From Andalucia godoyi And28 (Eukaryota > Protista > Jakobida), in the NCBI GenBank assembly GCA_009859145.1, contig VRVR01000016.1, forward strand, positions 47,370 to 111,369: a stretch of 64,000 nucleotides of DNA, read 5' to 3'. The stretch's first letter is position 1. Each line of letters begins with the position of its first letter. Position numbers and translations under genes: made by a program. Shown here one piece after another: positions 8,310-60,971 of the stretch. Below the pieces are notes generated by a model that was not told the origin of the DNA, made no database searches, and saw only the letters and a list, made by a program, of their open reading frames with translations.

Positions 8310-8715
8310 TAGTCATTTGCGCCACCCCTCTCTTCCGCGTGCTTTCTCATTAAATTAAATTTTAAAAAAAACGTTTTCTTTTTTTATATAATCATCGCGT
8401 CCGTCCTTTTGCCGTGTGTAGCGTGCTGCGCTTCGGGCGCCTGCATTGTACGTTGATGCATGACGATGCTCGCTGTTCCGTCCCCATCGGCATCAATTGA
8501 TCCCGGTTCCTCTCTCCTATTCATCATTTCTCCCAGAATCATCGAGCTGGACTTCGGCAGCGATTTTGCATCTTTCGGGTCTTCTTCTGTTTGCCATGCA
8601 GAACATTGGAGGAGGGGCGGCTATCGTCTCTTGGTCTTGGTGTTTTCAAACAACAAAAACAACCAAATAAAATTGATTTAGCTTGCGGTGCACAGTTCAT
8701 ATTAGCGTGGATACG

Positions 8716-20628: not shown

Positions 20629-21076
20629 GCCGTTGAATAATAACACGTCATTGTCATGCATGCGGAAGAAAGTATACATAAACAGACACGGTCAATACTG
20701 GCCGACACTAGCACGTTTGTTTCACAGGGAATTCGTGCTTACGCGTAGCCATCTGTCATTCGTTCAAGCGCACTGCCAAGAGGCGAACTTCCAAGACACG
20801 ATCTCGTATCTCCAGGTGCATCAATCGCTGCAACTGAGGACACGAAAGCGCCTGCTGCTAGGGCCGTCAGAATCAAAATGCACCCTTCTCAGGAACAATG
20901 TATCACGCTGAGAAAGTGGCTCACCGATTGATCGAGATTGGGGACGGAGCGCGGAACATCTATCTGAAGAGCGCCGTGAGGCGTGTTGGGGGGCCTATCC
21001 CCTTCGCGGCAACGGGATGCAAGATTGAATATGCATGTCTATTCGTAGATATGCATGCTCAGTGTATAATGCAGGT
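20629..21076 (+). mobile_element. Non-autonomous, internally deleted IS607/Fanzor2 (TnpB-like) element, copy 1
   Basis: The 3' ~228 nt are ~96% identical by eye to 49481-49706, and the left ~115 nt match 49153-49265. It encodes PAARAVRIKMHPSQEQCITLRKWLTD* (to 20931) joined to IDRDW-(1-nt frameshift)-DGARNIYLK. It ends in ...CAGTGTATAATGCAGG. Confidence 0.85.
20981..21076 (+). ncRNA. Putative omegaRNA scaffold (element right end), copy 1
   Basis: GGGG-CCUAU-CCCC hairpin, a ~17-bp stem closed by a UUCG tetraloop, and a 3' CAGG able to pair with the CCU loop. Position matches TnpB/Fanzor omegaRNAs. Confidence 0.65.
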
Positions 21077-23923: not shown

Positions 23924-24442
23924 TTATTGCATTTCTTTGGTCGATATTCTGGTCACCAGCTGGGACTCTAGGTTTTGGAATTGGGTCGTCGGCGGCAGCT
24001 TGAGAAAACTGGAAATCAGCGTTGTGTCTGCTGCGCCTCCCACGGTAATGGGAACCATCTGCGCACCGTGTACTTGAGAAATAATAGAATCCACGTATTT
24101 CTCATTGGCTGGGTTGAATATTCCCACCAAAACACTTCTCGACGTCGCCTGGATTCCGAATATGGACAATGACTGAGCTATGCTTGTGGACGGGGACAGG
24201 CAGTACACGAGCTCCGCATGCAACGACTTGGTCTTCATCTTCCCATGTTCAAAGTTTGAAATCGCTCGGTTCAGTGCACAAAGCAGGTGGAACTCAGACA
24301 ACACATACCGCGCATCCATGAATGCAGCATCCAACTTTGCTTCTCGAATACTCTGCAGCAGTGATTCCGCATTCAGCACATTCTCAAAGTGGTACACATA
24401 AAAATCATACGCCGGATGCGATTCAACTTTAAACAATTTCAT
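23924..24442 (-). CDS. CGI121: EKC/KEOPS complex subunit Cgi121/TPRKB
   Basis: Motifs F.NV.NA..L, HLLCALNRA, KMKTKSLHAELVYCLSPSTSIAQSLSIFGI; 172 aa. Confidence 0.92.
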   Translation of the reverse strand: MKLFKVESHPAYDFYVYHFENVLNAESLLQSIREAKLDAAFMDARYVLSEFHLLCALNRAISNFEHGKMKTKSLHAELVYCLSPSTSIAQSLSIFGIQATSRSVLVGIFNPANEKYVDSIISQVHGAQMVPITVGGAADTTLISSFLKLPPTTQFQNLESQLVTRISTKEMQ

Positions 24443-48038: not shown

Positions 48039-49004
48039 CTATTCGCGTTTCTTGTGGTTTGCGTGGGTGGCGTCGGTACTGGCCGACTTGCCCGACTTGC
48101 CCGACTTTCCCGACCTTGAGGGATCTTTCAGTACCCCAAATTGCATCAAGACGCTCTTGAAGAACAGACCGCACCAGTAAAAGTTGACGCCAGCATGAAT
48201 CACCATAGCAATGGACAAAATCCATCCGAGTTGCGAAGGGAACACGGTGAGCGCGCTCCACGTTCTCCAGACGACAAACGCATTCCACACGAACCGCGAG
48301 CCCTGGAACGCCACGATCAGCAGCAGCGCATTCACCATCGCAAACACCCCCTTGTATCGGAGCTTGATGAAGAGCCACGAAAAATGCAGAAACGGAGTCG
48401 ACACTTCGTTTGTCATGAACGCCGCCATCACCCAGTGACCGATTCTTCCCCACAGACCAAGTCCAAAGCACACAAAGATGTTGACATGGTGCAGCAGCAA
48501 CGTCGGCCAGCCCAGCAGTCCATACGTCTGGTACGAAGTGATGAAGTCATAGAACATGTATCCGGCCGTAATCGACAGCGCCATAGTGCATCTTCCTTCC
48601 GAGCACGCACACACAACCTCTCCAACGCCTGGGTTCATTATAAAATCTCGGAGAGTCAAGAACTGATTGCCGAGGCTGTCCCATCCTACCCTGGTGCCAG
48701 AAATCAGCGCGATGCACGTAAACGCGCCAACAGTTCCAACGATGGAATGAATCAGCGACACAAACTTCACTCCAGCCGTCCGCACATCCTGTGGCGAAAG
48801 CTTCCTTGTGACAAACGCAGGAAAGATCTTCGGACCAAACACCTCAACCGCATAGTGAAGCACAAACCAAAACACACACGACGAAACCGATATCAACAAC
48901 GAACCCCATGCATACTCTGCAAACGTGGACGATCCGTGAGCACACGAATGAAACGGCAAGCTACGCCACTTTTCCTGGAAATCGCCTCCAAATACACTCG
49001 TCAT
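48039..49004 (-). CDS. TLC (TRAM/LAG1/CLN8) domain membrane protein, TLCD4/TMEM56-like
   Basis: Motifs GYMFYD, LLLHH, NEVSTPFLH and F..SRF, with several TM segments. Likely ATG is 49004; the longer ORF start at 49181 lies inside the transposon left end. Confidence 0.88.
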   Translation of the reverse strand: MTSVFGGDFQEKWRSLPFHSCAHGSSTFAEYAWGSLLISVSSCVFWFVLHYAVEVFGPKIFPAFVTRKLSPQDVRTAGVKFVSLIHSIVGTVGAFTCIALISGTRVGWDSLGNQFLTLRDFIMNPGVGEVVCACSEGRCTMALSITAGYMFYDFITSYQTYGLLGWPTLLLHHVNIFVCFGLGLWGRIGHWVMAAFMTNEVSTPFLHFSWLFIKLRYKGVFAMVNALLLIVAFQGSRFVWNAFVVWRTWSALTVFPSQLGWILSIAMVIHAGVNFYWCGLFFKSVLMQFGVLKDPSRSGKSGKSGKSASTDATHANHKKRE

Positions 49005-49152
49005 TTCCCCGCTTTCCCCCTCCTTCTCTCTGTTCAAAGCAGCCGCCACAAGACAAGCCGCAGATTCACTAATTACTTTAATCAGAATCGCCAAAGACGC
49101 CGTGGCACCGGGGACAGACGGGAGCAAATAGACAAAGTCAATCACATCAAAT

Positions 49153-49706
49153 GCCGATGAATAATGACAAGTCATTGTCATGCATACGCAAGTATACGTA
49201 AACAGACATGGTCGATACTGGCCGACACTAGCCTGTTTGTTTCACAGGGGATTCGTGCTTACGCACGCTCGGCCAAAATTCAGCCTGTGACACAGGCTCC
49301 GCATTTCCGACACTCTTTAATGTAGCATCCGTAGCCATCTATTCTATCATTCGTTGGTTCCACTTTATTAATTCAAATATGGGCGTGAGTGCGCTAGGAA
49401 GACGCATTCGCCTACGCCTACGCCGCTCGATACAGGGCCTCCTAGGTCCCGCAGACCTCCTAAGAGACCGCGTGTCACTACGCCTGCTGCAAGGGCCGTC
49501 AGAATCAAAATGCACCCTTCTCAGGAACAACGTGTCACGCTGAGAAAGTGGCTCACCGATTGATCGAGATTGGGAACGGAGCGCGGAACATCTATCTGAA
49601 GAACGCCCTGGGGCGTGTTGGGGCCTATCCCCTTCGCGGCAACGGGATGCAAGATTGAATATGCATGTCTATTCGTAGATATGCATGCTCAGTGTATAAT
49701 GTAGGT
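49153..49706 (+). mobile_element. Non-autonomous, internally deleted IS607/Fanzor2 (TnpB-like) element, copy 2 (most complete)
   Basis: Frame 49381-49563 reads ...RSRRPPKRPRVTTPAARAVRIKMHPSQEQRVTLRKWLTD* (NLS-like basic patch plus TnpB N-terminal motif). From 49559 it reads IDRDW-(+1 G)-NGARNIYLKNALGRVGAYPLRGNGMQD* (RuvC-III). It ends in ...CAGTGTATAATGTAGG. Confidence 0.88.
49613..49706 (+). ncRNA. Putative omegaRNA scaffold, copy 2
   Basis: GCGU/AUGC and GUUG/CAAC helices, a GGGG-CCUAU-CCCC hairpin, a stem at 49655-49671/49676-49692 with a UUCG loop, and loop CCUA complementary to the terminal UAGG (49702-49705). Confidence 0.7.
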
Positions 49707-49773
49707 GATGGATGCAGCCAGTTCTTCTTAAGGTTACGTTGCAGCAGATGTAGATTTTATTTGTTTTTTAATT

Positions 49774-50760
49774 TTAAACCTTGACAATGGCGGCTCGGAT
49801 GCGGTCAGCGTCTCGATTGGTCTGGTCGATGGCAGCTCGGACCGCGGACTCTCCTACAACCGTGACCATTCTCGCAGGATTCCCAGCGAACCTCGAGTAC
49901 GGAGGGACGACGGTGCATGGAGCGACAACGGACCCGTCCTCAATGACACAGCAGTCATTCAGAATGCATCCGGGTCCGATGCGCACGTGCGACCCTATCC
50001 GCACGTACGACCCTATTCGCAGTGCATGCACCGATGAATGACGACCGATCCACACGTGATTCCCGATCGCCAGCTTGTGGAACTGCAGATTCGCCGTCTT
50101 CTTCGTAATCTCTCCCCCACCCTCCTTGCCGATGCTTTCCGGCGGCACTACAAGTCCATACGTACGATCATCCCTCTTACCACCACCGCCACCACTGCTA
50201 CTACTACCACTGTTGTTGATGGCGATGGAGGAGGTGCCGTCGCTGGTGACGACGCTACTTTGGAAGTGATCCGAGTGGTCCGTCGTTGGATTGAGAAAAG
50301 AGCGGGTAAAAGAGCTTGAAAACCCGAATGGATGTTGGAGCGATTCTACTGGAATAATATGTGTCGGGGCGTCCATGGCCGTTTCAAAAGCCGCCTGATC
50401 TGCAAAAGGCGGTGGAGAGGACGCCGATGAAGCCGTTAAAGTCTTCGTTGTGGCAGTGGTAACAGCGGAATGGGAGGAAAGAGAGAGCAAAGAATCGATG
50501 CGAAGCGAAGGACAAATGACCGAATTTTCGTCCACAAAGCAAATATCACCCATGGAAATTGCAGCCTTGTCCGAGGCTACTTTGACAAAGGGCATGAGGA
50601 CGGTTCCTCTGCCAATGGACACTGCGTCGAGATCCAGTATCTGGGCTGAGTTGGAAATCAGAATAAGCTGTTGAGAAGCAGGAATCGTCAGAGACGGAAC
50701 GGCCGGAGTCAGCTGCATCCATTGCGACGCAGGAGAAGGCGCATACGGAACAGGTTCCAT
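49774..50760 (-). CDS. DCTN5: Dynactin subunit 5 (p25) with a large S/T/G-rich insertion
   Basis: Left-handed beta-helix hexapeptides LAIGNHVWIG...IGSYVRIG...CILNDCCVI...VVPPYSRFAGNPA match DCTN5. ATG at 50760. Confidence 0.85.
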   Translation of the reverse strand: MEPVPYAPSPASQWMQLTPAVPSLTIPASQQLILISNSAQILDLDAVSIGRGTVLMPFVKVASDKAAISMGDICFVDENSVICPSLRIDSLLSLSSHSAVTTATTKTLTASSASSPPPFADQAAFETAMDAPTHIIPVESLQHPFGFSSSFTRSFLNPTTDHSDHFQSSVVTSDGTSSIAINNSGSSSSGGGGGKRDDRTYGLVVPPESIGKEGGGEITKKTANLQFHKLAIGNHVWIGRHSSVHALRIGSYVRIGSHVRIGPGCILNDCCVIEDGSVVAPCTVVPPYSRFAGNPARMVTVVGESAVRAAIDQTNRDADRIRAAIVKV

Positions 50761-60516: not shown

Positions 60517-60822
60517 ACTCCGTTCTGCTTGTCTCAGATCCGCCCCGTTGGTTGGTAATACCTGCCCCCGCCACGCAAATCACGGCTCGCAAGTCCGCGC
60601 TTCCCGCCGTTGCCACTTATTGCGAAATGATGAAGCAATCTAAAGCGCACGCAAAGAAAAACACTGCCACGCGCCATGCGCATGCGTTTGCTATCTTAGC
60701 ACCTCCGTCACACGATGCCCGATTCGTTTCGCCCCATTTTGATCATGAAGTCCCTATAAACACGCAGCCGTGTTGCATTCTCGCACAGCGACACTCATTT
60801 CTTATTTTTATTGTCCATGCAA

Positions 60823-60971
60823 CGCAACATCTATCTTGGGAACGTCTCTCATGCCGAGGGGGCGTGTTGGGGCCTACCCCCCTTCCCAATCATGCTATGC
60901 ATGTTGCTGGGTTGCAACATTGATTATAGGTGATCGGTGATGATTATCCGTGGTCAGTGTACAATGTAGGT
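60823..60971 (+). mobile_element. Diverged right-end remnant of a related IS607/Fanzor2 element (copy 3) with putative omegaRNA
   Basis: cgc aac atc tat ctt ggg aac encodes RNIYLGN, versus RNIYLKN in copy 2 with synonymous changes. It also has GGGCGTGTTGGGGCCTA and the end CAGTGTACAATGTAGGT. Confidence 0.7.

Follow-up and report, generated by a model that had tools for sequence, protein, structure and literature searches.

Mini-elements probably derived from an IS607-type Fanzor2 transposon in the nuclear genome of the jakobid Andalucia godoyi

A stretch of 554 bp in the nuclear genome of the jakobid Andalucia godoyi And28 is very probably (about 85%) a member of a small family of repeats that originated from an IS607-type Fanzor2 transposon and became non-autonomous after an internal deletion. 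This stretch, referred to as copy A, occupies positions 49153-49706 of the window, i.e., the whole piece of 64,000 nucleotides that was analysed (assembly GCA_009859145.1, contig VRVR01000016.1, positions 47,370 to 111,369 of the forward strand). It is homologous to Fanzor2 elements, has undergone a deletion, exists in multiple copies and displays a conserved fold at its right end. Giant viruses, fungi, molluscs, and Naegleria are known to possess Fanzor2 nucleases, and jakobids are a deep-branching lineage important for early eukaryote evolution. No report of a Fanzor in Andalucia or in jakobids was found in a literature search, and the Fanzor papers searched contain no mention of jakobids. 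An earlier note on this DNA, made from the sequence alone, had described copy A as a reduced Fanzor2 element still carrying a guide-RNA region; the core of this reading is supported because each testable part of it held up.

The coding remnants of copy A are spread over three frames. A three-frame translation, in which all the peptides quoted in the earlier note are present, gives RSRRPPKRPRVTTPAARAVRIKMHPSQEQRVTLRKWLTD followed by a stop in frame +2 (49444-49563), IDRDW in frame +0 (49559-49573), and (G)NGARNIYLKNALGRVGAYPLRGNGMQD followed by a stop in frame +1 (49575-49658). Two broken frames had been announced; the frames are broken indeed, but three are needed because a single extra G after IDRDW splits it from NGARNI by a shift of one nucleotide. 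The N-terminal motif of the KIRxYPxxEQ..L..W type (K/R-I-R-x-Y-P-x-x-E-Q ... L..W) is present as RAVRIKMHPSQEQRVTLRKWL. The RuvC-III RD motif (DRDxN[GA]AxNI) is also present, split into IDRDW and NGARNIYLK, which correspond to positions 469-486 of the profile of full-length relatives described below. In Pfam, each peptide has a single match: the first one aligns to positions 4-24 of the 47 of HTH_OrfB_IS605 (E=0.16), the second one to the final 11 positions of Cas12f1-like_TNB (E=0.26). Each of these matches is weak alone, and together they represent both ends of one protein family in the correct order. The basic patch RRPPKRPR, likened to a nuclear localization signal in the earlier note, is found in copy A at 49450-49473 and is missing from copy B, the second full copy in the window. 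A scan of the copy A peptides against NCBIfam returned no match. The features of copy A and of the two other copies of the window, all on the + strand, are the following.

49153..49706 (+): mini-element copy A, 554 bp, with the same limits as the homology to copy B
49153..49254 (+): left end of copy A, with terminus GCCGATGAATAA and 89% identity with copy B
49255..49477 (+): variable middle of copy A, with A-specific insertions and decayed code for a disordered N-terminal region
49492..49554 (+): what is left of the Fanzor N-terminal motif, RAVRIKMHPSQEQRVTLRKWL, read in the frame starting at 49444 and aligned to the full-length relatives
49555..49573 (+): deletion junction ..KWL TD / IDRDW, the same as in copy B
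49575..49658 (+): what is left of the Fanzor C-terminus, NGARNIYLKNALGRVGAYPLRGNGMQD up to a stop, i.e., the RuvC-III tail, out of frame with IDRDW because of one inserted G
49580..49706 (+): right-end module of copy A, resembling an omegaRNA scaffold, 151.5 bits with covariance model R1, up to ...AATGTAGG(T)
49620..49632 (+): small hairpin GGGG-CCTAT-CCCC, its stem invariant in 5/5 right ends
49648..49703 (+): long terminal stem-loop (helices 5 and 6), stopping just short of the right boundary
20629..21076 (+): mini-element copy B, 448 bp, ending in ...AATGCAGG(T), found by BLASTN and nhmmer
60820..60971 (+): copy C, a divergent right-end module alone, ending in ...ACAATGTAGG(T), nhmmer E=1.4e-38, 106.1 bits with model R1

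Copy B includes both the KWLTD/IDRDW junction and the +1 frameshift of copy A, and its right end (20948-21076) reaches 143.3 bits with model R1. The borders assigned to copy A from its sequence alone, 49153 and 49706, coincide exactly with the limits of homology to copy B, the right terminus of copy A being ...AATGTAGG(T) at position 49705/49706. Two full copies were seen, sharing their junction and their ends at unrelated sites, as expected from the claim that the mini-element spread after the deletion. Identity between A and B amounts to 96.6% at the right end (49561-49706), 89% at the left end, and only 63% in the middle part, where large indels produce 112 gapped columns; by Fisher tests, the right end differs from the left end with p=0.03 and from the middle with p=1.5e-12. 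Copy C retains the RNIYL codons and translates to QRNIYLGN and VLGPTPL. The flanks of the three copies are mutually unrelated, and all three are intergenic.

A fourth genomic copy, ANDGO_01483 (P0010), is annotated as an 82-aa protein and has a shorter deletion. Its layout is MHPSQEQRATPRKWLGA / EYTSKTCGRCGEIH...NGAWGIYLK, with a junction that joins profile position 136 to position 440, so that the zinc-finger start (EYTSKTCxxC) is retained within EYTSKTCGRCGEIH; in Pfam, it matches Cas12f1-like_TNB with E=0.0026. Word-index protein searches with the stitched peptide of copy A and with P0010 returned ANDGO_01483 alone, this method being too insensitive for short queries. A direct sequence search of the PDB with the copy A peptides or P0010 yielded either chance matches to von Willebrand factor via KTCGxCG or none.

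Some other short similarities were noted in the window. The heptamer GCCGTTG at 60606-60612, 214 bp upstream of copy C, is identical to the first 7 nt of the left end of copy B and shows no further similarity to the left ends; it may be a chance match, or else copy C could belong to an element of 366 bp that starts here and whose interior is unrelated. Two 18-mers resembling the right end, 8439-8456 on the - strand and 24271-24288 on the + strand, are weak and unsupported by nhmmer and by the covariance model, and they were rejected. Within copy A, about 100 bp of the segment 49255-49385 have no counterpart in copy B, and CACTCTTTAATGTAG, in this extra sequence (49311-49325), has 80% similarity to the right-end terminus CAGTGTATAATGTAG. 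Possibly, a fragment of a further right end is nested in copy A here.

The protein family was identified with a profile of the window peptide and ANDGO_01483, run by exhaustive HMMER on 1.84 billion representative proteins (E<=1e-3). This search produced 24 non-self matches, of which 23 were scanned, mostly 410-680 aa long. Cas12f1-like_TNB was detected in 23/23 of them, HTH_OrfB_IS605 in 20/23, and OrfB_IS605 in 14/23, and their consensus displays a complete D...E...D RuvC layout. The remnant profile thus retrieves TnpB/Fanzor proteins only, in agreement with the identity first proposed. In the PDB, the profile of these relatives scores best against 9B0L (ApmFz2, E=2.8e-69), followed by ISDra2 TnpB, and no Fanzor1 structure appears at E<=0.01; 9B0L is the mimivirus Fanzor2 (PMC11832414). 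The nearest full-length relatives would consequently group with Fanzor2 and IS607 TnpB rather than with Fanzor1, an assignment based on structure-profile scores, domains and viral context. More than 435 relatives lie on giant-virus contigs. In 20/28 sampled giant-virus loci, the open reading frame (ORF) located directly upstream on the same strand encodes a MerR helix-turn-helix and a Resolvase domain, i.e., the IS607 TnpA; in L002, the ORF preceding P0015 does not encode a recombinase.

The extent of the deletion appears when each of the 2,471 six-frame fragments of the window is compared with the profile of the full-length relatives (492 positions). The best 4/2,471 fragments are the N- and C-terminal pieces of copies A and B, with E-values of 2.6e-6 (N-terminal remnant of A), 1.5e-5, 0.017, and 0.083, all others being at 0.26 or above. 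These fragments cover profile positions 105-134 and 461-487, and in the stitched peptide, a part aligned to positions 107-134 is followed by one aligned to 469-486. The 334 positions missing in between, about 1.0 kb, agree with the loss of about 1 kb of nuclease sequence that had been proposed. RuvC-I, RuvC-II, and the zinc finger ([TS][TS]xxC4) are deleted from the window copies. Indeed, the RuvC-I aspartate region (..DPGVRTF..) is absent from A, B, and C, and profile positions 135-460 are unmatched in the window; the window copies therefore cannot encode a nuclease. No TnpA remnant (MerR helix-turn-helix plus Resolvase) was detected in the six-frame fragments either, the best match (E=0.41) lying outside the elements.

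A set of metagenome contigs (L128-L131, protein P0021) shows a 62-aa ORF (..EEYISKTCTRCGHIH..LLEIGTALWAFSLKH) after a 404-aa ORF, among bacterial-looking Pfam neighbours. Such an arrangement resembles a TnpB cut in two by a frameshift, at the very RDW position where the A. godoyi remnants are shifted.

Longer copies with RuvC-I and RuvC-II between the two motifs, which the earlier note had proposed to look for, are found in two contigs with ends homologous to those of the mini-elements. The first one, L127, is a 3.9-kb contig of Logan run SRR27710300 in which an ORF of 242 aa, encoding a Resolvase domain (E=4.8e-16), is followed by an overlapping ORF for an intact Fanzor2, P0014 (424 aa). Among the profile matches, P0014 has the C-terminus most similar to the remnants (DRDWNAARNIYLKN...LGPTPF), the C-terminal remnant of copy A being 58% identical to it. 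The second contig, L132, comes from the same run and encodes another intact Fanzor2, P0048 (546 aa), with 68% identity to P0014 and no tnpA. The RuvC-I region (..DPGVRTF..) is present in both proteins. The IS607 origin suspected for copy A agrees with the serine-recombinase TnpA encoded by L127. In the viral collection, nothing closely related to P0014 was found.

Homology between L127 and L132 extends from ACCG... at the left through ...GTAGGCG at the right, and the nucleotide similarity of both contigs to the window copies is restricted to the ends. At the left, their terminus RCCGNTNAAYAA is similar to that of the window copies, and the first 12 nt are alike in A (GCCGATGAATAA), B (GCCGTTGAATAA), L127 (ACCGCTTAATAA), and L132 (ACCGTTCAACAA). 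At the right, covariance model R1, built from the right ends of A, B, and C only, matches exactly at the 3' ends of both intact Fanzor2 genes. In L127, the match (2113-2261, 59 bits, E=4e-14) overlaps the last codons of the gene and ends in ...ACAATGTAGG, and in L132, it reaches 40 bits (E=1.7e-9). The two contigs and the window copies are thus alike in the DNA and in the structure of their right ends and differ by the intact 424-aa and 546-aa ORFs of the former and the recombinase of L127.

The left flanks of L127 (1-157) and L132 (25-62) carry repeated TAGGGTTT / GTGTAGGGTTT, like degenerate TTTAGGG telomere repeats, which suggests a subtelomeric location in their host; no telomere-like repeat was found in the 64-kb window. 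Just beyond the right ends lie a 371-aa ORF in L127 (2644-3759, - strand) and a 304-aa ORF in L132 (1989-2903, - strand), both without a Pfam match, the latter having motifs that recall, by eye, endonuclease/exonuclease/phosphatase proteins.

In intact relatives, the 3' region encodes the omegaRNA scaffold, and the flanking DNA past the right end supplies the guide. The claim that a guide-RNA region was retained in the mini-element is borne out insofar as the right end is the best-conserved part and displays compensatory base-pair changes. Among the five right ends of A, B, C, L127, and L132, 95.4% of cells are paired versus 36-54% in slid controls, and 14/40 pairs show changes on both sides, including 8/18 pairs of helix 6. 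These covariation values were reached by 0/500 shuffles. In an independent MAFFT/RNAalifold analysis of A, B, and C, the terminal hairpin showed compensatory changes at four pairs.

Several giant-virus Fanzor2 loci contain a motif, GNG-RNMUAK-CNC, that is the counterpart of the small hairpin GGGG-CCUAU-CCCC. This counterpart occurs within 300 nt after the RNI codons in 10/69 loci versus 7 times in 879 kb elsewhere, an enrichment of about 60-fold, and its middle pair may be GC, UA, or AU. Depending on the locus, it lies within the ORF, spans the stop codon, or follows it, a variation that speaks in favour of nucleotide-level conservation.

In 522 kb of viral loci, model R1 gave two weak matches only (L048, 4086-4241, and L101, 4268-4344), both at the 3' end of a Fanzor2 gene and on the coding strand. 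The L048 match contains GUUGGGACCUAGCCCC, and its ending ...CUAGGU resembles the A. godoyi right end. An 18-nt right-end motif was also searched in viral (2 matches) and metagenome contigs (42 matches); these numbers are about those estimated from collection size, and since no match extends past the seed, the motif was discarded.

IS607 junctions are bounded by GG (PMC10711439), and the earlier note had likewise mentioned a GG core for IS607 elements. At the right ends, A, B, C, L127, and L132 all finish in ...AGG, followed by T in A, B, and C and by C in L127 and L132, but at the left junction, GG is found in copy B alone among those compared. The left-flank dinucleotide is GG in B, TG in A, and AA/TA and GA/TG in L127 and L132. 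In this respect, the elements differ from the giant-virus Fanzor2 copies, since duplicate copies of the latter have GG on both sides. With four or five junctions to judge from, a CG crossover combined with CCG as the left motif would suit L127 and L132 without reservation; for A and C, CpG-to-TpG decay has to be assumed. CCG is the target-adjacent motif (TAM) of NlovFz2 from Naegleria lovaniensis (PMC10432273). No terminal inverted repeat (TIR) was detected at the termini and no target-site duplication (TSD) in the flanks of A, B, L127, and L132. Repeats containing ATGCAT (CATGCAT / ATATGCATG) occur at 49174-49191 in the left end, at 49655-49690 in the right-end hairpin (A and B), and at 60893-60905 in an insertion of copy C; they may be recombinase-binding sites.

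Genes are densely packed in the surrounding genome, as long ORFs with few introns, on either strand. According to Pfam, the neighbours of copy A are a TLC-domain gene and a dynactin subunit 5 gene, both on the - strand, copy B stands between a UTP10-like gene and a Noc2 gene, and copy C lies downstream of an SNF2 helicase gene with a membrane-protein gene on its other side. The first ATG (49181) of the TLC-domain ORF (48039-49181, - strand) falls within the left end of copy A (49153-49185). Either the true start codon of this gene is further downstream, or the insertion gave it its first residues and 5' leader.

Taken as a deleted Fanzor2 transposon, the mini-element was formed by an internal deletion of about 1 kb that took out the entire catalytic core (RuvC-I, RuvC-II, zinc finger) and left the left end, a decayed 5' coding piece, and the last ~145 bp, i.e., the RuvC-III tail codons and the non-coding right end. 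The deleted form would then have spread or been copied to at least two unlinked intergenic sites, thus behaving as a non-autonomous element. A serine-recombinase TnpA acting in trans would recognise both ends and move the element, and the right-end RNA could be loaded by a Fanzor2, likewise provided in trans, that would cut donor sites once they are emptied. The copies may thus be transcribed and mobilised in trans, might still be active today, and could carry a working guide-RNA module. As they stand, the window copies are frame-broken relics without a partner nuclease in the sequence examined, and they are not a nuclease.

Several observations weigh against this reading. The search for an intact Fanzor and a serine-recombinase TnpA, advised in the earlier note, succeeded in L127 (run SRR27710300) and not in A. 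godoyi, for which neither was found in the window or among the annotated proteins searched. L127 and L132 come from that run and are at most candidates for the autonomous partner. Copy A itself has its remnant broken across three frames, and GG at the left junction is confined to copy B. With regard to the RNA, no Rfam match was found in 48900-50000 (E<=10), the minimum free energy of the copy A right end alone is ordinary (z=-0.96), and the alignment used for covariation was fitted to model R1. The right-end RNA is a predicted one, and conservation of the right end could come from recombinase-binding DNA instead of RNA.

A first alternative, which is plausible enough to be considered and yet improbable, is that the family is still live, with an intact Fanzor2 and perhaps a TnpA located in unassembled subtelomeric DNA of A. 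godoyi and with copies moved and protected as PATEs are. It would account for a right-end module far better conserved than the rest, with a fold kept via compensatory changes, and bacterial PATEs encoding omegaRNAs used in trans have been described (PMC10055086). Moreover, the genome paper left out subtelomeric scaffolds, 'primarily transposon/viral-like' (PMC7050145), and L127 and L132 have flanks with TAGGGTTT telomere-like repeats, so that a hidden intact copy may exist. Besides the absence of an A. godoyi nuclease or recombinase from the proteins and DNA searched, this alternative is opposed by the divergence of A and B, whose ends are 3-11% different and whose middle parts are far more so, which means that they are not very recent copies. 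A particular form of it, also doubtful, would be a guide-only network in which the mini-elements give rise to omegaRNAs, a hidden subtelomeric Fanzor2 loads them in trans, and an IS607 recombinase ensures mobilisation.

Copies A, B, and C could alternatively be scraps of integrated giant-virus DNA rather than a cellular transposon family, since the protein family is abundant on giant-virus contigs and the small hairpin motif is common to a subset of viral loci. This is very unlikely given that two unlinked intergenic copies have an identical internal junction and precise ends, that the flanks contain no other viral sequence and the neighbours are ordinary housekeeping genes, and that P0014, the closest full-length relative, is without a close match in the viral collection. 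There is similarly little reason to believe that the right-end module was co-opted by the host as a regulatory or structural RNA or DNA unrelated to transposition. Admittedly, the three copies are intergenic and near gene ends, and the module is conserved alone in copy C, but the copies have no common position or orientation relative to neighbouring genes, and conservation of the right end is explained without any host role because the same module stands at the 3' end of the intact Fanzor2 genes of L127 and L132. Finally, assignment to another superfamily, be it Helitron2 or another DNA transposon with Fanzor1, or IS200/IS605 with a Y1 transposase, would draw on stem-loops near both ends, as in IS200/IS605 and Helitron2 (PMC3627910), and was rejected as the least credible reading, since L127 encodes a serine recombinase and not Y1 or RepHel, the ends are RCCG... 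and ...TGTAGG instead of 5'-TC / CTRR-3' with no TSD or long TIR, and the nearest proteins are Fanzor2-like with an HTH_OrfB_IS605 N-terminus, a type of domain that Bao and Jurka detected only in TnpB and Fanzor2, Fanzor1 being undecided (PMC3627910).

The derivation from an IS607-type Fanzor2 transposon is in line with what is known of such elements. The remnants display the same N-terminal KIRxYPxxEQ..L..W and C-terminal DRDxNGARNI motifs as ApmFz2 (mimivirus L79, 9B0L), ISvNY2A_1, ISvAR158_1, and NlovFz2, and their nearest relatives adjoin MerR-Resolvase TnpA genes and score best against 9B0L. The chlorovirus elements ISvNY2A_1 and ISvAR158_1 are among the Fanzor2 examples of Bao and Jurka (PMC3627910), and Fanzor2 is already known in another discoban, Naegleria (PMC10432273). 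Like the window copies, Fanzor2 elements have neither TIRs nor TSDs (PMC3627910), and the structured RNA region from the ORF 3' end to the right end is alike in both. On the other hand, the window copies are devoid of a nuclease core and of TnpA, are frame-broken, span only 150-554 bp, and, compared with the giant-virus copies, miss GG at most left junctions. The reRNA of bacterial IS607 TnpB (ISXfa1; Yoon et al., PMC10711439) measures ~150 nt, from the gene 3' end past the right boundary, and the module retained here measures 127-152 nt. The right-end GG is shared with ISXfa1-type IS607.

The closest functional analogue of the mini-element would be the bacterial PATE. PATEs and minimal IS200/IS605 elements (Meers et al., PMC10055086) are likewise protein-less, consist of both ends and a guide-RNA scaffold, and depend on proteins in trans. 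They move by single-strand 'peel-and-paste' with a Y1 transposase, whereas the window copies belong to a eukaryotic nucleus and to the serine-recombinase (IS607) lineage, and their RNA is a predicted one.

In a compact protist genome, the nuclease and the recombinase have thus been lost while both ends and the folded guide-RNA part have survived and increased in number. Should A. godoyi contain no intact partner, these copies would be mere relics of an earlier invasion. If the guide-only network were true, it would be the first eukaryotic counterpart of bacterial PATEs as well as the first sign of active serine-recombinase transposition in a jakobid nucleus. Covariance model R1 detects both intact and degraded members of the family, and L127 offers a compact Fanzor2 of 424 aa, together with the RNA and the recombinase that belong to it, as a candidate for characterisation. 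The family provides a natural test of whether omegaRNA modules survive in eukaryotes as trans-acting parts, in a PATE-like way.

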